Made by a program: the position numbers and the translations under genes
Shown here: in pieces, positions 2-32,708 of the stretch
How the letters are laid out: every line of letters starts with the position of its first letter
How positions within the stretch are numbered: position 1 is the stretch's first letter
DNA from: Blastocladiella emersonii ATCC 22665
Taxonomy: Eukaryota; Fungi; Blastocladiomycota
Length of the DNA stretch: 64,000 nt
NCBI GenBank assembly: GCA_025594325.1
Contig: JANHCV010000016.1
Location: 497,734 to 561,733, forward strand
Direction of reading: 5' to 3'
Notes under the pieces: model-generated
Databases searched by the model: none
Told to the model about the DNA's origin: nothing
What the model saw: only the letters and a program-made list of their open reading frames with translations

Positions 2-3000
2 CTCGCCGACTCGGCCGGCTACCGCTTCACGTCCCCGGCGAGCGGCCCGTCACAGTCGGCGCTCCGCAACGACTGGGGCGACAAGCCCGGCGTGTTCGCG
101 AGTCTGGTGCGCCAGAAGCTGTCGGAGCTGCTCCTCGCCGCGCCCGACCACACGGTCCCGTCCGAGGAGCTGATCGTCGGTCTCGGCCTCGACCCGCAAA
201 AGTACCCGCGCCAGCGCAAGTGGTTCAACCGCACCATCGCGTCCATGGTCGCCACGGGTCACGTCGAGCGCATCCAGCGGCCCGGCGGGCCCTCGACGCG
301 CCGCCTTGTCAACTGCATCCACCTGCTCGTCCCCTACCGCATGCCCGTCACGGTCGGCTCGCTCGCCCCGCTCTCGGGCGGCGTCCGCCGCGCCACCGAC
401 CACGTCTCGGACTCGCAGAACCGCGGCTCGTTCCGCCAGATCGCGGTCGTCGACGACGACGCGCCCGCCGCCGCCGGCAGCGACGACTCGGGCGTCCAGG
501 TCAACACCCCGCGCCACAACAACTTGGACGGCGGCGTCATCTCGGTCACGGGCGGTGCGGCTGCTGCCAACGGCCTCGTCCACGACTCGGGCCTGCTCCA
601 GGACGGCGTCCTCGCCGACCTGCCGTTCGAGTACCAGATCCACCGGCTGCTCGCGCTGACGCCCGACGGGCTCACGGCGGGCCAGCTGCGCCGCCAGCTC
701 GGCCGCATCGGCGCGCGCCCCTTCAACAAGTTCATTGACCGCCTGATCCTGTCCAAGAAGACAGTCCCCGGCGCCCTCGTCGTTCACCGCGTCGCCGAGA
801 ACCGCGGCCGCGAGCGCCGCTACCGCTACTTCACCGACGCCGCCATGAACTCGCTCCAGGCCGCCGACCAGAGCGTCCAGGTCCTCATGCGCGAGCAGGA
901 CCGCCGCACCGCCATCACCAACCTCGTCGTCGCCGGCGCCACCCAGACCAACGTCGCGGCCGCCTCAGCCGCTGTTGTTGCCGTGTCCGCGTGCAACTCG
1001 GCCGCGGGCACGCCCCTCGTCGGGCGCGGTGCGGGCCGAGGCGCCTCGTCTCCCGCTGGCGCTGCTGCTGGTGCCGCGGCGCCGGGCACCCCGGCGCCTG
1101 CGTCCAAGTCCCCGCCGCACGCGGGCTCCGCTCTCGCGCGCGTCATGGGGACGCCCGCGCCTACTACCGAAATCGTCGACGTGGACACGCCCGGCTCGTC
1201 GTCCGCTCCCGGCACCGAGCCGCGCGCGCCGCGTACGGTTTCGGGCGCCACCTTCTCGCCGTCGAACCCGCCGTCGTCGGTCCTCGCCGCGACCTCGACT
1301 CGCCCGCTCAGCGCGCCCGCGCCGTCGTCGGCCGTGTCGCTCGGCGTGCGCACCACGGTCGAGGCGGTGCGGCGGCGCATCATCCTGCTCGAGATTCTGG
1401 CCGAGCACCGCGTCGCGCTGTACAACCACGAGCTGCTCAAGGAGATGCAGTCGCGGTACATTTCGCGGTACCCCGAGGCCGCCGGCAGCAACATGGACAA
1501 GAAGACGCTGCAGCGCGTCGTCGAGCACCTGCGCGTCGAGAAGCGCCTCGAGCAGAAGGTCGTCAACTTTGGCATGATCCACGGCGCGCCCGAAAAGTCG
1601 GAGCTCCTCGTCATGTGCGACGTCGACAACCCCGTCACCGACGAGGAGGTGCTCGACAAGGTCAAGGAGATCGAGGGCCGGCTGCTGTACGCCACGGGCT
1701 CCCGCGTCACCGATGCGCCGACCCGCGACTGGTCCCACTCGGGACCCACGCCCAGGGCCGAGGACGGCGGCAGCGACTCGGGTGACGGCGGTGACTCGGA
1801 CACCGGGTCGGGCCGGCGCGGGTCCACGTCGCAGCTGCCCGTCGACGCGCCGCTCCACGGCGACGGCGCCCGTGCTGCGCGGTCGCACGCGGCGGCGCAC
1901 TGGCGCGTAGTCGCGCAGCAGTACGGGTGGCAGGACGCGCGCATGCTGCGTGCCAAGATGCTGTACCAGTTCCTGTACGAGCGGACGTCGGCCGAGGTGG
2001 CGCCCGACCACGTCTTCGAGACGACCATCATCTTCCGCGAGCTCACGCTCGGCATGTACCTGCAGCTGATCGGGCACACGCACGTGTCGGAGCGGCTCAG
2101 CGCGTACTTTGACCAGCACCAGGACACGCCGCTGATCTGCATCGCCGAGGACGTGCGCGGCGAGCTGCTCGGCAACGACCGCACCAAGCGCCGGTTCAAG
2201 TCGCACGTCATGCACCTGCTCAACATCCTGTCGGCGCTCAACGTGATCCACCCGGTCGGCCTCGAGGGCTACTTCAAGACGGTGAGCGAGCTATCGCCGC
2301 TCCACCACAAGTATGTCGTCCCGCGCACCTTCCGCATGCTCAACTACCTCGCCCCGCGCCACGAGCGCGTCGAGCTCCAGGAGCGCGACGTGTCGACGCT
2401 TGGCCGCATGCACCTGTTCTGGAGCGAGCTCGAGGTCATGCGCGCCGCCACCGCGCCCCTCCTCACCGGGTCCTTGGTCACGGCCGATACGCCCGACCCA
2501 GCCAACGGCGTCGCGCGCAATTCTCCGGTGACCTCGGGCCTGACCCACCCCGCCGCCGAGGAAGCCGCCCGCAGCGCCGAGGCTCTGGCGGCCGACGGCG
2601 CCGACGGCGCCGACACCACCACGGCCTCCGCCGCGCCCTCCACCTCGCCCCTCACCTCGCCCATGCCGACCCCCGCACCCGTCGTGGTCCCGTCCATGGC
2701 GCCGCCGCTCGTCGGCCAGGGCAACCAGGAGAGCGACCCGATCAAGTTCATTGGCCTGGCGCGCAACTGGATCCCGACCACGACGCTGAGCAAGCGGCAG
2801 CGGCGCACCCTCGAGCAGGTGTGCGACCCGACCACGGGGCAGACGCCGCGCAACCACTACAACACGTGCCAGGAGCTCGCGTTGCAGACCGGGCTCACGA
2901 TGCAGCGCGTCAAGCAGTTCCTCAAGCGGTTCGAGGACGACTACGTCCGCCGCAAGGTCATGGACGAGGAAGGGCTCGCGATGCCCGGGTTCGCCGGCAT

Positions 3001-5329
3001 GCAGCTGCGCAACCGGCCCGGCGCCGCCATGTCGGGCGAGGGCGGCGAGGGGAGCGATGGCGACGACGCGTCTTCGCGCACCGTGGCCGACACGCACGCC
3101 ATGTTCGGGCCCGTCGGCGCCTCCGCCCGCCGGTTCGCCCGCTCGGGCACGTCCGCGGCCATGGCGCGCCTGAGCGAGCGGCGCGGGCGCACGTCGGACG
3201 GCGGCGCCAAGGCCGTCAGCTTGCAGCGGCAGCAGCAGGCAGGCGGCGGCGGCACGCGCGGGCGCAAGACCGGGACGCGCGGCAATGGCCGCGCCGGCAA
3301 GGCCAAGCAGCGCGGCAGCAAGCTGGCGGGCACGGTGCAGCTGATCGATCCCGAAACGGGCGCGGTCGAGCTGGCCAAGCCCAAGCGCACGCGCTTCTCG
3401 TGGAACCCCGAAGCCGACGTGCAGCTGATCCACGCGTGGGTCATCCTCAACTACCGCGTGACGTGCGGCGCGATGCGCAGCATGTCGTGGAAGACGGCGA
3501 CCGTCATGTTTGGCGGCCGCCCCGTCGGCACGATCCGCCGCCGCATCATGCTGCTGCTCAAGGTGCCCGACTGGGCGCTGCGCGCCAAGCGGCTCGAGCG
3601 CGCGTGGGCCGCGCACCTCGGCGAGGGGTGCCCCGACTGCGCCGCGGCCGGGACTGGCGCTGCGGGCGAGTCGTCGACGACGTCGGCCTCGACGCCCGTG
3701 CTCGACGCGGACGCGGCGCCCGCCACCACGTCAGGTGCCGCCGCGTGGGACCTGGCCAAGTGCATGGAGCACCTCGCGGCGCTCCCGCTCGACACGTACT
3801 CGGGCATGGCTGCGAGCGGGCCGCACGGCGGGTGCGACCTGCCCGACTCGATCGAGGAGCTCGAGGCCATGTTCGAGGTGCACGCAACGCCCACGGTCCC
3901 GTTCCACGAGCGCAAGGACCAGGAGGCCACGGCACGCGCCAAGCTCGTGCTCATGTACGAGAACGCCATGTACGTCGACCCGATCGAGCCCGAGCCCGCC
4001 GCGATCTTCCCGATCGTGTCGCCCGCCGAGGACGACGAGGAGACCGAGAAGACTGCGGCCTACGACGGCCAGTCGGTCGCGGACCACGCGGACACGCGCC
4101 TGTTCCACGACGTCGCCGCGGTCACGTCGAAGGCTCGCCCCACCGCGTCGGGCGGCAGCACCAACAGCGCCGCCGACTCGGACTCGGACGAGCGCGGCCC
4201 GCCGGCAATGTCGGCCAAGGAGCGCGAGCAGATGCAGGTGGTGATCCAGCTGCTCAAGATGATCTGCCTGACGCCCGACTCGCAGTACAACTCGACGCAG
4301 GCGTTTGCGATGCTGCACACGTTCTCGGGGTCGGTTCTCGAGCGCGCGCTAGCGGCCGTGCGCGAGTCGGGCGCCCTCGTCCGGCTCCGCGCCCACCACG
4401 GCAAGTCGCGCGTCATCCCCGGCCGCAACTACGCGCTCTCGGACCGGTTCTGCGCCCAGCTGTACGGCAACACGGCGCAGACCCAGATCGCGCAGGCCGT
4501 GCGGGCCCTCACCCAGCTCCATGACACCCTGCAGGGCACGGACCCCACGGCCACGGCCACCGGCGACGCCGACGCGTCGCACGAGTTCATGCTCGAGGAC
4601 ATGGTCGAGGACGGCACGATGCTGGCCCTCATTGACCTGCAGGCCGCGGGCCACATCAAGCTCGACGTGCAGATCAACCGCGCGCGGCTGTTCGCGCTGC
4701 CTATTGTCCCCGCGCGGTCGCGCGCGTTCGACATGGAGCTGCCCGTCGCGATCAAGGTCGCGCCGACGCTGCCCGTCCCGCAACGGCAGCTCGGTGACGG
4801 CAAGGTGCCGTCGACGCACGAGCTGGTGCTCGGGCGCACGTACGTGACGACGGCCGAGGACGACGACATGATGGGCGGCGAGCCGGCGACACCCGCTGGC
4901 CCGCCGTTCGTGCGGCTCGGGTTCTCGGCGCCGGTGTGGGTCGACCCGCGCGACGAGGAGAGCATGCGGCTGTACTGCATCCCGCGCACGCGCATGGTGC
5001 CCGACGCGGCGGCCGATGCCGAGGTCGCGGCGCTCGAGCCCGTGCCCGAGCTGCGGCCGTGGATCGTGCCGCGCATCTGGAACAACATCCACGGGCACGT
5101 CGAGCCCGCGATTCTGAGGTCCGCCATGACGTGTGTGCTCGCGTTCCTGATGCGCAACCCGGGCGCGCGGCTGTCGTGGCTGTGCGACCGGTTCGACCTC
5201 ATCTTCCAGCGCGTCGAGGTCGAGGAGCTCGTCGAGCAGCTCGAGTTCCGCGGCGCCGTGCTGACCCAGATCGCGGACGGCCAGGTCTACGTGTTCCTGT
5301 GCGACGGCTTCTACCACAAGATCCTCTAA
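2..5329 (+). CDS. TFC3: RNA polymerase III transcription factor TFIIIC, largest (B-block-binding) subunit tau138/Tfc3/Sfc3-like; 5' end truncated by the window edge
   Basis: Intronless 1,745+ aa ORF; the frame stays open upstream of the listed GTG back to position 2. It has several winged-helix-like segments, an RTRFSWNPEADVQLIHAWVIL motif and a C-terminal WNNIHGHV..SAMTCVLAFLMRNPG segment typical of Tfc3/Sfc3/GTF3C1. Recognised from family knowledge. Confidence 0.8.
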   Translation, partial: LADSAGYRFTSPASGPSQSALRNDWGDKPGVFASLVRQKLSELLLAAPDHTVPSEELIVGLGLDPQKYPRQRKWFNRTIASMVATGHVERIQRPGGPSTRRLVNCIHLLVPYRMPVTVGSLAPLSGGVRRATDHVSDSQNRGSFRQIAVVDDDAPAAAGSDDSGVQVNTPRHNNLDGGVISVTGGAAAANGLVHDSGLLQDGVLADLPFEYQIHRLLALTPDGLTAGQLRRQLGRIGARPFNKFIDRLILSKKTVPGALVVHRVAENRGRERRYRYFTDAAMNSLQAADQSVQVLMREQDRRTAITNLVVAGATQTNVAAASAAVVAVSACNSAAGTPLVGRGAGRGASSPAGAAAGAAAPGTPAPASKSPPHAGSALARVMGTPAPTTEIVDVDTPGSSSAPGTEPRAPRTVSGATFSPSNPPSSVLAATSTRPLSAPAPSSAVSLGVRTTVEAVRRRIILLEILAEHRVALYNHELLKEMQSRYISRYPEAAGSNMDKKTLQRVVEHLRVEKRLEQKVVNFGMIHGAPEKSELLVMCDVDNPVTDEEVLDKVKEIEGRLLYATGSRVTDAPTRDWSHSGPTPRAEDGGSDSGDGGDSDTGSGRRGSTSQLPVDAPLHGDGARAARSHAAAHWRVVAQQYGWQDARMLRAKMLYQFLYERTSAEVAPDHVFETTIIFRELTLGMYLQLIGHTHVSERLSAYFDQHQDTPLICIAEDVRGELLGNDRTKRRFKSHVMHLLNILSALNVIHPVGLEGYFKTVSELSPLHHKYVVPRTFRMLNYLAPRHERVELQERDVSTLGRMHLFWSELEVMRAATAPLLTGSLVTADTPDPANGVARNSPVTSGLTHPAAEEAARSAEALAADGADGADTTTASAAPSTSPLTSPMPTPAPVVVPSMAPPLVGQGNQESDPIKFIGLARNWIPTTTLSKRQRRTLEQVCDPTTGQTPRNHYNTCQELALQTGLTMQRVKQFLKRFEDDYVRRKVMDEEGLAMPGFAGMQLRNRPGAAMSGEGGEGSDGDDASSRTVADTHAMFGPVGASARRFARSGTSAAMARLSERRGRTSDGGAKAVSLQRQQQAGGGGTRGRKTGTRGNGRAGKAKQRGSKLAGTVQLIDPETGAVELAKPKRTRFSWNPEADVQLIHAWVILNYRVTCGAMRSMSWKTATVMFGGRPVGTIRRRIMLLLKVPDWALRAKRLERAWAAHLGEGCPDCAAAGTGAAGESSTTSASTPVLDADAAPATTSGAAAWDLAKCMEHLAALPLDTYSGMAASGPHGGCDLPDSIEELEAMFEVHATPTVPFHERKDQEATARAKLVLMYENAMYVDPIEPEPAAIFPIVSPAEDDEETEKTAAYDGQSVADHADTRLFHDVAAVTSKARPTASGGSTNSAADSDSDERGPPAMSAKEREQMQVVIQLLKMICLTPDSQYNSTQAFAMLHTFSGSVLERALAAVRESGALVRLRAHHGKSRVIPGRNYALSDRFCAQLYGNTAQTQIAQAVRALTQLHDTLQGTDPTATATGDADASHEFMLEDMVEDGTMLALIDLQAAGHIKLDVQINRARLFALPIVPARSRAFDMELPVAIKVAPTLPVPQRQLGDGKVPSTHELVLGRTYVTTAEDDDMMGGEPATPAGPPFVRLGFSAPVWVDPRDEESMRLYCIPRTRMVPDAAADAEVAALEPVPELRPWIVPRIWNNIHGHVEPAILRSAMTCVLAFLMRNPGARLSWLCDRFDLIFQRVEVEELVEQLEFRGAVLTQIADGQVYVFLCDGFYHKIL

Positions 5330-25936: not shown

Positions 25937-27918
25937 CTACTCACCGCCCGCGGCCGCCTTGATCGCGTTCCCGAGCACGTCAAAGAACATGCCGCTCGGC
26001 CGCGGTCCCGCACCCGCCGCTGTACCCGCGACACGCGCCACGGCCGCACCGACACGCAGTACCGTGTCCTCGTCCCACCACCGGCCGAGGATCTGGAATC
26101 CGATCGGGCACCCCGTGGCCGCGTCGACGCCGACGGGGCAGCTGAGCGCGGGCAGGCCCGAGAAGTTGCCGAGCGTGGCGAACCGCATGCCGTTAATGGT
26201 GCCCGCAGCGTCGCTGATGCCATGCGCGACGCTGCCGGGCGTGATGGGGGGCGCCGAGAAGGGCGTCATGGGGAGCACGATCACGTCGGCGTGCGCGAAG
26301 ATGGTGTCGCGCAGCACGTCGAGCGTGCGCGTGCGCATGCGCTGCGCCGTCAGGTAGTCGTCGACCTTGGCCGCGGCCTGCGCGTGGCACAGCAGCTGCG
26401 TCGGCAGCCCGAGCCGCCCGATCTTGGTCGGGTACCGGTGCCGCACCAGCGAGAAAATCTCGGACGTGATCGACATGACGTGCCCCGTACGGATGAGGTG
26501 CAGGTCTGGGATCACAATGTCGACGAGCTCGGCGCCGCACTGCGCCACGAGCGCGTCCAGGACCGCCTGGCACACCGTGACCACGTCGAGGTCGGCGTCG
26601 CGGAAGTAGTCGCCGTAGTAGCCGAGGCGCAGGCCCTTGAGCGGCGTGGGCGCTGCCGCCCCGCTGCTGGTCGCGGTCGCGAGGTAGGACGGGAGCGACG
26701 GCAGCGGCTGCAGCAGGCTGAGCGGGACCGTCGGGTCGTGGCCCGCCATGACGGCGTACCCGATGGCCACGTCCTCGAGCGACGCGCCGAGCGGGCCAAT
26801 GTGGCCCGTGGACGGGTCGAGGCACGGCGTCGGCGCGCCCGACACGCGCGACCACGTCGGCTTGAGCCCCCACACGCCGCAGTACGACGCGGGGATGCGC
26901 ACGCTGCCGCCGCCGTCGGCGCCCACGGCCAGCGGCACGAAGCCCGCCGCCACGGCCGCGGCGCTCCCACCGGAACTTCCACCCGTGTGGCGGTCGAGGT
27001 CGTGCGGGTTGCGCGCGACGCCGCAGCGGCCGATCGGGTTGCAGGTGATCACGTCGAGCCCGAGCTCGGCCATGTTGGTCTTGCCGACGAGCAGCGCGCC
27101 GGCGTCGCGCAGCCGGGCGACGCAGAAGCTGTCGTGCGCGGCCTTGTCAATGTCGGCGTTGAAGAAGTCGGTGCCGAACATGGCGGGGGTCAGACCCTTG
27201 ACGTCGAGCTCGTCCTTGACGGCGACGGGCACGCCGTCGAGCACGCTCTTGGGCGCGCCCGCCTTCCACCGCGCCGTGCTCTCGGCGGCGGCCGCGAGGA
27301 CCAGCGCGTCGTCGACGACGATGAAGGCGCGCAGCGGCGGCGAGTACGCGTTGGACGCGGCAATCGCGGCGAGCAGCGTCCGCGCGACATCGGTCGGCGT
27401 CACGGCGCCCGCCGCGTACTGCGCGTGGTAGTCGCGGATTGTCCAGTGACGGAACGGGTGCTCGGCCGACGCGGGCCGAGACGCGGGCACGGGCAGCGCG
27501 GCAAAGTCGGCGACGGAGACCTGTACAGCAGGCACGCAAGTCAGCTTCTATTCAGAACACGCTCACACTTTGGCACGTACCGGGCGCGCCTTGGCCGCAT
27601 CCAGGGCGTCGTGCGACGGCGGGACGAGCGGGTACAGCGACGCGTCCTCGCGCAAGTCGAGCCCGCGCAGCGCCGTCATGCCGGCGTCGGCCCAGATGCG
27701 CGCCGATACGGCGGGCAGCGCCCACGCAACCTGCGCGACGGCCCACTGCGGGAACCAGCCCTCGAGGACCGGCGCCTTGCCGCGGATCGGCGTGTACGTT
27801 GCCGTGATGGCGGTCACGGCAGCAGCAGCAGCGGCGGCAACGGCAACGGCCTCGCCGGCACCGCGGCGGGTCGGCGAGGGGTCACGCTTGGGCTTCGGGT
27901 CCGAGTCCGAGTTCATGG
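25937..27918 (-). CDS. FAAH: Amidase-signature family fatty acid amide hydrolase, plant FAAH-like; intron 27521-27580
   Basis: Amidase triad motifs VAVKDE, GGSSGGS and GADGGGSVRIPA are present. The N-terminal APVLEG and FRHWTIRDY...TPTDVA segments resemble Arabidopsis FAAH. The GTACGT...CAG intron splices in frame. Start codon approximate. Confidence 0.85.
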
Positions 27919-28439
27919 TGTGCTCCATCGATGTCGTCGTGGGAGAGCGAGGATGGGCCGGAGCGCGATGGACCGCTTTTGTAGTCCCCCTCGCCCACGC
28001 CCGTCCTTGCCGGAACCCTCTTGGGGCCTCGGAGCGACGACGGCGGCGGCGGGGGCGGCGGCGGAGATTCGGGGGGACATGTGGGCGGGGGACGGCCGAG
28101 CGGGTGGGTCGGCGCCGAGCAGGGCCCAGGGGGGGCGACAACCGCGCGCGCTGTGGAAGCGATGATCGACACAGGGAAGCCGACGCGTGCCATAGACTGC
28201 CACTCCAATCCGCCTCTCAGGCCTCCGCTTGCGCCACCCGCCACATCGCCTCGGCCGCTTTTCTCTCTCTCTTTGACCTCGGCAAGCCCGTGGATCGCAA
28301 TAAACATGATAACTATGCATTACAAAAATGTTCTCTCTTGCTGCAACTGCCCGATCTCTGACTTCCCTCGCGGGCCCGTGACCCGTTGGACTCGGCGCGC
28401 GGCGCGAAGCTGCGCCTGGCACGATCTCGCCGACCGTGT

Positions 28440-31390
28440 CTACGACTGGGGACCCACATGAGTGCCGTTGCGGTGGAAGCCGCGGTTGCTCGGTCTCGAC
28501 TCGATGCCGCCCTCGACTTCGTCTGCTGGGCGCTTGCGCGGGCGGTCGGCGGGGGCGGCGGGAGCGATCGGAGTGCCGCGTGCCCATCCCTCGCCGCGCA
28601 TCGTCCCCCACACGCCCGTGTTGCGCTTGTACCCGCCGATCATCGAGTGCCGCGACGAGGACCCGACGAACCCGCCGCGCTCGTCAAACGGCTTCGCGAG
28701 CTGCTCGGCCGAGTGGTCGGCCTTGCTCATGGCGAGCAGGATCACGATGCGTGGCAGCGTGTTGGACTTGGCGCGCCCGTCCTGGCCCCACGCGTTGCGG
28801 CAGCCCGAGAAGTACGCCTCGACCATGTCGGTGGTGAGGAAGCGCTGCCGCCACGGCTTGGCGTTCGGCCCTGGGTTGGCGCGAACGTAGCGCTCGTCAA
28901 AGGCCTTGAACGCGCCAATGATGCTGAACAGGGCCGTGATGGTGCAGGTGGGGATGCCGGACACGTACTTGGTCGGCGACCCGCCGTCGGCCAAACACCA
29001 CTTCTCGAGGAACGCGAGGTAGAAGATGCTGCCGGCCTCGTCGACGAGCTGGTGCCGCTGCTCAATGCCGAGGTTGGAGCTGTTCATCGCGTCCTGGAGC
29101 TTGCGGCAGGTGTTGAGGATGATGCAGAGTCCAGTACCTTTTTCGTTGTTGGGTCCGGCCGCCTCGCGCACCTTGTCGATGCACTCCATTGAGAACAGCC
29201 TTAGCGCCTCGGGAACGTTTTGTCGATCGCGTTTCTTCCACTTTGGGCCGAGCACCTCGGGGAACAGCTTGATGATCTTGTCGATCAGCGTGTGGTCCGT
29301 CTTGCCCTCAATGGAGCTCTCGCTGAAGTGGATCGCGGCGCGCTTGAACGCGTGGTCGCGGTCGTGCACCGTCACGATCTCGTGCAGCTGACCGTCGAGC
29401 CCGACTCGAACCACAGGAACCCATGGTACTCGCCGTACGTCGTGCTTGGGGTTGAGCTTCAGGCGCGCGTCGATCCACAGCACCGTCTGCACGCTCGTGA
29501 ACGCCGCCTGTGTGACCGTCGCGGAAGGGCTCCGTCTCAGCTTGTCGCGGACCTTGATGATGGCCTTGATGTGCACGTCTTTCTTCCAGGTCGTGAAGTA
29601 GTGCTCATTCCACTTGGCCTTGACGTCGCTCGAGTTGTTGAGCAGCGACATGGCCGAATCGACGTTGCAGTTGAACCACTCGCGCAGCGCATCTTCCTCC
29701 ATGTTCTTCCACTGCGCTTGCGCGTCACGAACCATCTGCGGGTAGCACGCCGCGCCAGGTCCGCGACCCATGAGGCAGTTGGCGTTCGAGCCGTCGCTCC
29801 TATACAAGCAAACTCGCTGTCAGCAAGCGCCGCTGATGTGGGACGAGGAGAACGTACGCTTGGGCGGCCACCGAGATACCAGCTTTCTTGAGCTCGTAGT
29901 TGATGTATCGCAGTACGGGTAGAATGATGCTGGCGGATTCGGATGCGACGAGAAGGCGAGCGACCACGAACTGCAGGTTGTTGAGCGCGTCGGTCACGGT
30001 GAAGACGAGAATTTTCGTCGCCGCAGCGGTGACGGCCACGAGCGCGTCGTGGGCACCGTCGAGCGCCTCGATGATGAGCTGCAGCAGATCAAGGGCAACC
30101 TTGGTCGGGCGCTGTACCGGGCCCTGCTCAGTCATGACCATGGCCACCTGCTGTTCGAGCTGCTGCGCGTGGAGCTCGAGCCAGGAAATGTTCCTAATCA
30201 GACACAGCAAAGGTAAGCGGTCATGATCGCCGACCACAAACCTGTTGAGCGTACATATGGACACGGCTGCGCTTGGCGCTCAGCTTGGCGAGGGCCACCT
30301 TGGCCTTCTCCTTGGAGGCGTCCGAGGTCTCGGGGCTCTCGATCTTGCTCCGCTTCCTCTCCTCTTTTTCAGCGAGCGCCTCCGAGTATACGTTCGCGCG
30401 CTCGCAGAGGTAGCGCAGCGTGTCGATGACCTGCTGCGCGCACTTGCAAAGCTTGTTCTTCTCGTTGAAACCTGGGAGGGCGGTGGCCGGTGCTGGTGCA
30501 GCGCCGCCGCTCTCCGACCCGACCGCGGCTGCTGCTGTTGCGGCTGGCGCGGCGTGGAACTCGGACACGGCCTGCTCGGCCGCATCGCACGCGTCGTTGA
30601 GCTCGTCGACCTTGAGCTTGTCGATCAGCTCAACGGGGAGCGCGAACTTGGGGTCGGACGCGTCCTTGAAGCGCTCGTCGTGGACTACACGCGGATCCGG
30701 ACGTCAGGGCGCGCGTATCGAGCGACAAAAACGCACGAAGCGAGCCGCACCGGGTTCCGCTAGAAGCTTGAACGCCATGTCGAGGTTACCAAACTCTGGG
30801 CCGCCTTGGACGATGCCGTCCTCATAGTGACGCGGCTCGTCGGGCTTGTCCGTGCCGTCGAACGCGACACACACTTCCACGATGTTGCCCTTGGCCTTCT
30901 GCTCCGTCACGTACTTGGCCACGTCCTCGATGCGGCCGTACTGGAGCCCGATCGGGTTCTTCTTGTCCAGGTCCTGCTTGGCCTTGCGCTGCACTGTGCG
31001 CGTGTCCGGGATGAACAGGTTGATGAGGTGCGGGGTGCCGTGTGCGTTGTGACGGACGCCGTCAGTCAGGCCGGCGGGCACGGCCTTTCCGGGCCCGCGC
31101 AGGTACCGGAACGCCTTGTGGCCGCCGCCCTCGGCGTGGAAGTAGCACCACGCCTCGATCGTCGCGGAATCGTAGAACGTGATCGTGATGCCGAGAACGC
31201 CGCGGACTTGGTCGCGAATATGTAGGAACATGAACTGCTTGCGGGGGAGCACGCTGTCCTTGGACAGCGCCGTGGCCAGCTGGATGAGGAGCTCGATGCC
31301 CTCCTTGTCCTTGATCTGCACGGCGAGAATGGCGAGCGACTGCACGTCCTCGGACCCGCCGCACGTCGAAGAGCGCAGCGTGGCGAACAA
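28440..31390 (-). mobile_element. P-element/THAP9-superfamily DDE transposase gene, spliced (introns 30685-30750, 30194-30254, 29800-29857); 5' end unresolved
   Basis: Three canonical introns (GTGCGG..TAG, GTACGC..TAG, GTACGT..TAG) join four ORF pieces in frame with no stops. Motifs appear in P-family order: GGGHKAFRYLRG..FIPDTRTVQR, VCVAFDGT (D1), ATKILVF, AGISVAAQASDGSNAN (D2), HDRDHAFK (DxxH), DRQNVPEALRLFS and FLTTDMVEAYFSGCR (E). Confidence 0.78.
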
Positions 31391-31556
31391 GGGAGTGAAG
31401 CATTGGACGGTGAATAGATCTGAGTATATATAGGGAGGAAATCATGCAGGCAATGGACAATGATGGGAGGTCAAGTTCGAGAACGAGCGCGACAGCGGCT
31501 GCTGCTTGCACGACAGCGAAGCCATGCGGATCTCGAAGTTGAGCTTGAGCTTGAGC

Positions 31557-32282
31557 TTACAGGAACGGATCCAGTTGATGGGCGGCGGCAGCAGCGAGAG
31601 GCCCGAGTTGGGCGAGCGGGACACCAAACCCGACCGCGACGGCAGGTTGAGCGGCGTGCGTGTGGAACCCGGGAGCCGCAGCGGGCAGGTGGACGGGCGC
31701 GTTGAGGCCGTGCGTGGCGCCGGCGAGGTCGATGGGCGCGTGGAGACCGTACGCCGGCGCGGGTGCGGGCGTTGTGCCCGGGCCGGAGCCCAGCCCTTGG
31801 ACGAGCTCGGCAGAAGAAGTCGATGGACTCGAGGGTAGCTCCGAGTAGGAGATGAGCGGGACAAAACTCGGCACGTCGGGGCTCGAGGTGCAAACGTCCG
31901 TCGCGTGGAGACGTTCCACCGCCCTCGCGACTTTCTCGACCACACCCGTCTCGTACTCCTGCATGGACGCGAGCCAGTAGCGCGTCGACTCGTCCCACAC
32001 GCGGTACCCCCAGTACCAGTCGGCCTTGTGCATGTGCAGCTCGTACCGCGCGTTCACCTCCTGGATGGCGCTAGCGAGGTTACGCTCCAGGTCCGACTCG
32101 GCGCGCGCAAACGTGCCGAGCGCCGCAGCCCGCGCCGCATCCCAAGCGGTTGGATGGTCCTGCGGGCCAGCGAGGGCGAGGGCGCGGCGGTGGCAGTGCT
32201 CGATTCGCGCGGTAGTCGACTGGCGCAGGATCTCTCGGAACATCTGCGCCTCCTCGCGGGCGACGCGTCGCCGGAACGTCAT
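31557..32282 (-). CDS. Hypothetical ORF immediately upstream of the transposase (possible 5' exon)
   Basis: 241-aa ORF with a helical, Trp-rich N-terminal half. Its stop lies inside a GTAAGC splice-donor-like sequence, suggesting it may splice onward. Confidence 0.45.
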   Translation of the reverse strand: MTFRRRVAREEAQMFREILRQSTTARIEHCHRRALALAGPQDHPTAWDAARAAALGTFARAESDLERNLASAIQEVNARYELHMHKADWYWGYRVWDESTRYWLASMQEYETGVVEKVARAVERLHATDVCTSSPDVPSFVPLISYSELPSSPSTSSAELVQGLGSGPGTTPAPAPAYGLHAPIDLAGATHGLNAPVHLPAAAPGFHTHAAQPAVAVGFGVPLAQLGPLAAAAAHQLDPFL

Positions 32283-32708
32283 GACGCGCGTGATGTCGGT
32301 CGGGTCATGAATTCGAGCATAAGTTCGCGGAACTTCTTCTCCGACATCACATGTTCATGGAGCGGCCATTTCATTGCATAGAGTGGGAATCGTTCATGCA
32401 CGATGAGGGAAGCGGAAGGAGCTGTCGACGGGTGGGCAAGCTGACCGCCGCGCGCGAGCGAGACGCGTGGGGGACGCGTTGAAAGGAGTGGCAGCCACTC
32501 GACTTTATGGCACGCGGATGGCCGTTGTCGCCCCCCTGAGCAGGGCCGCCGATCAGCCGCGGGCGGCACCGCTGCCGCCGACTCGGCCACCTCGGCAACG
32601 ACGGAGGAGGGAGGGAGACGACAAAGAGGGATGTATATGTTGTTACGTGTGGGGTGGGTAGATTCGACAAAACGGAGGGCAAGAGGGGGAAGAGAACGAC
32701 GGGGCCGC

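Follow-up and report, generated by a model that had tools for sequence, protein, structure and literature searches.

A complete, probably recently mobile and THAP-less transposon of probable P type in the fungus Blastocladiella emersonii

The 64,000-nucleotide stretch of Blastocladiella emersonii ATCC 22665 analysed here (contig JANHCV010000016.1 of GenBank assembly GCA_025594325.1, positions 497,734 to 561,733 of the forward strand), hereafter the window, contains at 28127-32538 one transposon copy of 4412 bp, which is bounded by terminal inverted repeats (TIRs) and a target site duplication (TSD) and is inserted in a spacer of about 370 bp between a mitofilin gene and a FAAH-like amidase gene. 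The element begins 161 bp past the mitofilin stop codon, lies about 200 bp ahead of the amidase start, and carries on the minus strand a predicted five-exon gene whose spliced coding sequence specifies 1150 amino acids (aa) with no internal stop. We regard it, with a probability of roughly 78%, as a low-copy class II cut-and-paste transposon, full-length and apparently autonomous, with a transposase that belongs, as a strongly divergent member, to the P-element/THAP9 superfamily; the window copy is a complete transposon without a THAP finger, probably of P type and probably mobile in recent time. P-type transposons are best known from animals, and the fungal records amount to a handful of low-copy finds from Allomyces and the rust fungi.

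On the plus strand the ends of the element read AGCAGGGCC then CAGGGGGGGCGACAAC at the left, and GTTGTCGCCCCCCTG then AGCAGGGCC at the right, and comprise the following features:

28118-28126, no strand: left copy of the TSD, AGCAGGGCC; the same 9-mer abuts both TIRs.
28127-28142, plus strand: TIR of 16 bp marking the element's 3' end with respect to the gene, CAGGGGGGGCGACAAC; homology to the second full-length copy, L002, ends exactly at this point.
28185-28206, plus strand: subterminal bipartite motif GCGTGCCATA-(2 nt)-CTGCCACTCC; both half-motifs recur inverted at the other end.
32485-32515, minus strand: subterminal bipartite motif of the 5' end, GCGTGCCATA-(11 nt)-CTGCCACTCC; it pairs with the motif of the opposite end.
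32524-32538, minus strand: TIR of 15 bp at the 5' end of the element, CAGGGGGGCGACAAC; shared with L002.
32539-32547, no strand: right copy of the TSD, AGCAGGGCC; a perfect 9-bp direct repeat of the left copy.

The bipartite motifs, which lie 58 nt from the tip at the 28127 end and 23 nt from the tip at the 32538 end, are presumed to be transposase-binding sites. An earlier reading made from the sequence only, which took the gene to span 28440-31390, had found no terminal inverted repeats; these and the 9-bp TSD are present just beyond that span. A scan of the window found the TIR at no further site, and no partner of the miniature inverted-repeat transposable element (MITE) kind was found within the window. 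The GC content of the element is 64% (window 28001-32000) against 70-72% in the flanks and neighbouring genes, a difference consistent with a rather recent arrival or with codon constraints of another kind. In the source sample, short-read contigs break at 32531/32538 and at 28156/28157, the latter about 30 bp inside the left tip, and no empty-site joint was found among the short-read DNA contigs of the locus.

Further copies of the element lie on other contigs. L002 aligns with the window copy from TIR to TIR at 98% identity (4396 bp against 4412 bp), has the same TIRs, and is flanked by a distinct perfect 9-bp TSD, AGCGCGGCG. Two other loci are partial: L003, a 5' half-copy, has its first base at the tip of the 5' TIR and breaks off some 2.4 kb further on, and L004 holds element fragments only. 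TIRs at both ends, a 9-bp TSD that differs between two insertions, and dispersed copies that end at the TIRs are thus all present, as for a class II element; of the features that had earlier been proposed for checking, the loci seen show TIRs of 15 and 16 bp and a TSD of 9 bp, not the 8 bp foreseen. The whole frame is open in only one of the four copies seen, that of the window. L002 differs from it by 74 substitutions (17 synonymous, 36 non-synonymous including one that turns E561 into a stop, and 21 non-coding) and by frameshifting indels, changes that indicate neutral decay after insertion and not host-gene constraint. In one sequencing run (X3), contig depth is 612-680 inside the element and 149 in the flanks, about a fourfold excess that fits some four collapsed copies, contig depth being only a rough guide. 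The strain has three named hypothetical proteins of this kind, found by a word-indexed search (H9P43_009285, H9P43_010043 and H9P43_004598). We also considered L002 and L003 as segmental duplications that include flanking DNA, which is contradicted by the homology ending at the TIRs and by the TSD that L002 has of its own.

Several smaller observations concern these copies. Contig depth in a second run (X2) is about 200 over window positions 28939-30000 and 52-135 elsewhere in the element, a hint that more partial copies exist outside the four loci. Exon 1 carries an indel of 38 nt (window 31900-31938) that is present in the window copy and missing from L002, L003 and most short-read contigs, and another of 39 nt, at about 31742, that is missing from the window copy and seen in other copies; no other part of the element is as unstable as the N-terminal region. 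At L004 (JANHCV010000004.1), positions 5102-5299 form a 198-bp fragment that is 100% identical to window 29163-29360 (transposase aa 845-910) and encodes the first 60 residues of a GenBank 'AAA ATPase midasin' (P0002, 302 aa), so that this midasin model either contains an exonised piece of the transposon or is an annotation chimera.

The spliced protein matches exactly a GenBank model of this strain, H9P43_010043 (P0007), named "hypothetical protein", whose locus (L001, JANHCV010000016.1) is 100% identical to the window across 5030 bp. The gene had been described as hidden; since a spliced GenBank model exists, this holds for the raw track of open reading frames (ORFs) only. In the order of transcription, the gene is made up as follows:

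31625-32282, minus strand: exon 1 (aa 1-220), Trp-rich helical orphan N-terminal region with 2 Cys; GenBank model and splicing.
31420-31624, minus strand: intron 1, 205 nt, GTGTCC..CAG, predicted, the weakest junction; present in two of the three GenBank paralogue models.
30751-31419, minus strand: exon 2 (aa 220-443), the KAFRYLRG...IPDTRTVQRK segment and D407 (VAFDGTD).
30685-30750, minus strand: predicted intron 2, 66 nt, GTGCGG..TAG, with a CTGAC branch-like site; splice test.
30255-30684, minus strand: exon 3 (aa 443-585), helical low-complexity insertion from the D407 hairpin to the ATKILVF strand.
30194-30254, minus strand: predicted intron 3, 61 nt, GTACGC..TAG; splice test.
29858-30193, minus strand: exon 4 (aa 586-698), the ATKILVF strand and the helix preceding D700.
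29800-29857, minus strand: predicted intron 4, 58 nt, GTACGT..TAG, with a CTGAC branch-like site; the PF21787 match crosses this junction.
28440-29799, minus strand: exon 5 (aa 698-1150 and stop), D700 (SDGSNAN), D844-x-x-H847, RDRQNVP, E1025 (TDMVEAYFS) and a basic tail; in a phmmer search it finds the distant relatives P0003-P0006.

The junctions are predictions, backed by frame restoration, by the paralogue models and by a sub-threshold PF21787 match (aa 641-708) that runs across the last of them. Excision of the three introns that the sequence-only reading had placed (30750-30685, 30254-30194 and 29857-29800, all GT..AG) does give a single frame of 2766 nt and 921 codons whose sole stop is terminal, and the same three junctions (introns 2-4) recur in three GenBank paralogue models. 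The SDG motif is formed across the last intron, as had been noticed: the codon of A698 is split (29859,29858|29799) and D700 is encoded at 29795-29793. The start of the gene at 31390 did not hold up; the codon there is TTG, there is no in-frame ATG before M283, and an additional exon is predicted upstream, at 32282-31625. In the GenBank model P0001, 60 in-frame nt (aa 824-843 of P0007) are taken for an intron; we rejected this, since in P0004 and P0006 the strand ahead of D-P-S-H aligns with these residues.

Based on sequence, the transposase likely belongs to the P superfamily. The motifs pointed out earlier are all in place, namely FDG at 30862-30854, HDRDH, RDRQNVP and TDMVEAYFS, and the putative catalytic residues of an RNase H-like core are D407 (30859-30857), D700, D844-x-x-H847 (29363-29352) and E1025 (28820-28818). 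A phmmer search with exon 5 against 1.84 billion representative proteins returned one 98%-identical protein of 827 aa and only four distant relatives (P0003-P0006), which, with the loci L005-L007, come from one ENA metagenome and SRA run SRR7244338; N-terminal ORFs of these relatives were taken from their contigs. The family alignment keeps [FL]D[EG]TD, [SF]DG[GS], D-x-x-H-x-x-KR and T-[DN]-x-[VL]-E-x-x-FS in this order, and the order D-D-D(2)H-E is the signature of the P superfamily (PMC8230255). PF21787 (TNP-like_RNaseH_N) is the top or only transposase match in the window protein (aa 641-708; E-value 0.009 as a segment and 0.22 as a whole protein), in the L007 ORF (E-value 0.0087) and in a 68-aa ORF of L006 (E-value 0.0041). 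In the window protein, L006 and L007, which are only about 20% identical to one another in this region, the matches all fall at profile positions 64-132 of 137 (64-121, 65-132 and 66-121, the window protein having 65-132) and cover the strand-helix-strand unit leading to the second Asp. PF21789 (TNP-like_RNaseH_C) appears at the E-motif of P0006 (E-value 0.048, 14.1 bits against a cut-off of 24). In a protein-language-model atlas, the two halves go to their respective P-type domains: residues 230-720 group with RNaseH_N/Tnp_P_element clusters (0.90-0.91), and for the exon-5 piece the clusters are GBD/RNaseH_C (0.94). As an internal control, the N-terminal 225 aa score no higher than 0.58. The P/THAP9-type assignment made earlier therefore stands on consistent PF21787/PF21789, language-model and motif-order evidence, with the qualification that all profile matches are sub-threshold.

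The N-terminal region lacks the finger typical of animal members of the superfamily. Neither the THAP family (PF05485, E-values up to 10) nor any THAP-like atlas match above 0.45 was found, and residues 1-225 hold only 2 Cys, so there is no THAP finger; we infer that the orphan region stands in the place, and perhaps the role, of this DNA-binding module. Compared with the Drosophila P transposase DmTNP (PDB identifier 6P5A) and human THAP9, the protein shares a helix-turn-helix-like 'aY..Lr...lP..RT' segment, FD-x-x-D, an ALVF-like strand, SDG..N, D(2)H..K and D..E..FS, and the element shares short TIRs, subterminal repeats and several introns (PMC8230255, PMC3698922). The spacings of the putative catalytic residues are 293 aa from the first to the second Asp (D1-D2), 144 aa from D2 to D(2)H and 181 aa from D(2)H to E, whereas the corresponding values of DmTNP are 73, 36 and 192 aa (PMC8230255). 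The excess is about 200 residues from the D1 hairpin to the strand that follows it and about 110 residues from D2 to D(2)H. The sequence of about 180 aa between D(2)H and E is helical and, set against the 192 aa of DmTNP, leaves room for an insertion domain like the GTP-binding one. At the ends, the TSD is 9 bp here and 8 bp for DmTNP, and the TIR 15 bp here and 31 bp there.

Short TIRs and a 9-bp TSD are not unprecedented. The divergent P element of Drosophila buzzatii and its MITE BuT5 provide a precedent for 9-bp TSDs, and they share with the present element 8- or 9-bp TSDs (9 bp for the autonomous copy), very short TIRs accompanied by sub-TIRs, a multi-exon gene and low copy number (PMC3698922). 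The D. buzzatii element differs in being an insect element that has a THAP domain, is recognisable by sequence and has a MITE partner, of which none was found here within the window. In fungi, P elements were reported by Yuan and Wessler (2011) from Allomyces, which like Blastocladiella belongs to the Blastocladiomycota; Repbase lists them for Allomyces and Pucciniales, and the survey of Muszewska et al. (2017) counted 11 fungal copies (PMC5751038). Hence the earlier remark that such elements are rarely reported in fungi is fair, but it should be read with Allomyces and Pucciniales already on record. Compared by description, the elements of Allomyces macrogynus and Pucciniales are likewise rare, low-copy and assigned to the same superfamily (PMC5751038), but they were found via the Pfam Tnp_P_element models, which the window protein fails to reach.

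The distant relatives are 24-32% identical over the C-terminal 250 aa and share W-x-x-RD-x-QNV, D-x-x-H-x-x-KR, T-[DN]-x-[VL]-E-x-x-FS and both core insertions; they differ in having AT-rich or unknown hosts, other N-termini, and ORFs that are broken or split, and in none of them is a TSD readable. In word-indexed searches for homologues, the B. emersonii paralogues and P0006 itself were all that came up, and a metagenome scan with W-x-x-RD-x-QNV gave 49 pattern matches, none of which was confirmed. L006 is a 3350-bp unit (31-3380 of a Logan contig of SRR7244338) from the AT-rich genome of a eukaryote, with a protein about 25% identical to that of the window, split by introns or frameshifts into ORFs of 265, 68 and 491 aa. 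Its TIRs begin CAGGGGGTGCTC, with a CAGGGGG tip at both ends, and the L007 contig ends in ...CCCCCTG, for which 0.04 chance matches are expected; the tip, being present in the window element, L006 and L007, therefore appears conserved across the family. The flanks of L006 are unlike each other and form no TSD, which is probably explained by a collapse of repeats in the contig. The D1-D2 and D2-D(2)H spacings in L006 and L007 are estimated at about 220 and 200 aa; both extra segments are therefore family traits and not local junk. The N-terminal region has no similarity to the upstream ORF of L006. Tentatively, and with rather more doubt than conviction, we suggest that the element and L005-L007 may form a deep, unnamed THAP-less P-like clade, marked by two core insertions, a CAGGGGG terminus and a 9-bp stagger, in which the window copy would be a still-active, autonomous master element in an early-diverging fungus for which genetic tools are few. 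L006 also carries a palindromic repeat, TCCTAYCATGGTAGGA, in its subterminal DNA; it lies at 3214-3229 and 3338-3353, and a degenerate version of it is found near 95-112.

The sequence-only reading had left a choice between a domesticated transposase with a cellular role and a young fungal P element with atypical ends. A single-copy, transposase-derived host gene like THAP9 would suit the intact frame and the position of the gene between housekeeping genes in the same orientation, but the unit has TIRs at its ends and a perfect TSD of 9 bp around it, the same ends recur in no fewer than three other copies or fragments, depth in X3 and GC content set it apart from its flanks, and the copies have diverged neutrally, L002 showing a stop and frameshifts. 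Instead of the marks of domestication, we thus find TIRs and TSD kept, about four copies, and a ratio of non-synonymous to synonymous changes of 36:17 that includes the stop in the sister copy. Because of the TIRs, the TSD, the other copy with its own TSD and the neutral divergence, we exclude domestication, the chance of which we put at next to nil; of the two earlier options, the young P element is essentially right, with the correction that its ends are ordinary (TIR, sub-TIR and TSD). A different question is whether the transposon encodes one protein or two. The 241-codon ORF at 32282-31557, which terminates in TAA at 31559-31557, could be a separate accessory protein and the transposase could start at M283 (31231) and be 868 aa long, with no 205-nt intron. 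In favour of two genes, intron 1 is three times as long as the other introns, has a weak GTGTCC donor and holds a TATATATA stretch, the GenBank annotation of L002 has two genes, for 247 and 827 aa, and no relative of the N-terminal region was detected, nor is this region conserved in L006. Yet the split model of L002 is forced by a frameshift, and intron 1 is a GT..AG intron that restores the frame exactly and is used in two of the three GenBank models. Residues 220-282, moreover, are open, have no ATG and weakly align with the start of the L006 and L007 ORFs, so an upstream exon is needed for their translation. We therefore retain the five-exon gene and consider two genes unlikely.

Several observations weigh against the P assignment itself, and they are best considered together with the alternative that the transposase belongs to another C/DxxH lineage (hAT-like or MULE-like, that is, Mutator-like) or to an unnamed sister superfamily. 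No Pfam gathering score was met, so that the HMMER check proposed earlier reached no threshold for the P-type families (PF21787, PF21788, PF21789, PF12017 and PF12596); the exon pieces and P0001-P0006 give no transposase family at E-values below 1, the PF21787 scores are 16.7-17.9 bits against a cut-off of 24.6, and PF21788 never matched in any family member. Sequence searches of the PDB with the protein and two family profiles, the Drosophila P transposase entries included, gave no match. The structural check was of no use in either direction, the AlphaFold2 models built from 7-row alignments having predicted local distance difference test (pLDDT) values of 37.9 for the full protein and 43.8 for aa 636-1075 and Foldseek against the PDB returning noise. 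The D1-D2 and D2-D(2)H spacings are about four times the canonical ones, and an orphan region of 220 aa takes the place of the THAP zinc finger of DmTNP and THAP9. The run of G in the 3' TIR of the window copy is 7 long, against 6 in its own 5' TIR and in both TIRs of L002; this extra G could be a real 1-bp insertion that possibly impairs mobility, or a homopolymer assembly error.

Another lineage would account for every P-specific match being below threshold, for the two core insertions, which are unknown in P, and for the finding of only four distant relatives in so large a protein collection. The 9-bp TSD, seen in two insertions, is more typical of MuDR, whose range is 8-10 bp, and is not the commonest P value (7-8 bp). 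The CAG-starting TIR tip and the E-x-x-FS motif also recall hAT. A C/DxxH motif is common to hAT, MuDR, Kolobok, Dada and P (PMC10045372). However, with E-values up to 10, no match was found to the hAT model PF05699 or to a KDZ model, nor in any family member to MULE (PF10551), Transposase_mut (PF00872) or SWIM, and the TSD of 9 bp departs from the 8 bp expected of hAT. The TNP-like N and C families are the only transposase families to appear; they follow the expected order, and their positions correspond in three or four divergent members. Both atlas searches give P-type named families only, and FDETD/FDGTD, SDGSNAN, DPSHVLKR and TNDVENFFS fit the P pattern (compare PMC8230255). We therefore maintain the P assignment and consider another lineage distinctly improbable.

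In a P-type mechanism, the transposase would bind the bipartite subterminal motifs, the cut would fall at the CAGGGGG-tipped 15-bp TIRs, and reinsertion would use a 9-bp stagger; the element may be active at present. It extends a known kind of transposon and does not constitute a new mechanism. To the sparse fungal P record it adds a reference element with a full copy, an open frame, readable ends and a measurable TSD, and it shows how far the P core diverges, having no THAP finger, two large insertions and no match above threshold to any curated profile, so that Pfam-based surveys will overlook the lineage. Should it be active, the element would be a potential insertional mutagen for Blastocladiella. 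The FAAH-like amidase gene (PF01425) occupies window positions 25937-27916 in the same orientation as the transposase gene and starts about 200 bp past the left TSD; the insertion therefore lies in the promoter or 5' region of the amidase gene, the expression of which it may affect.

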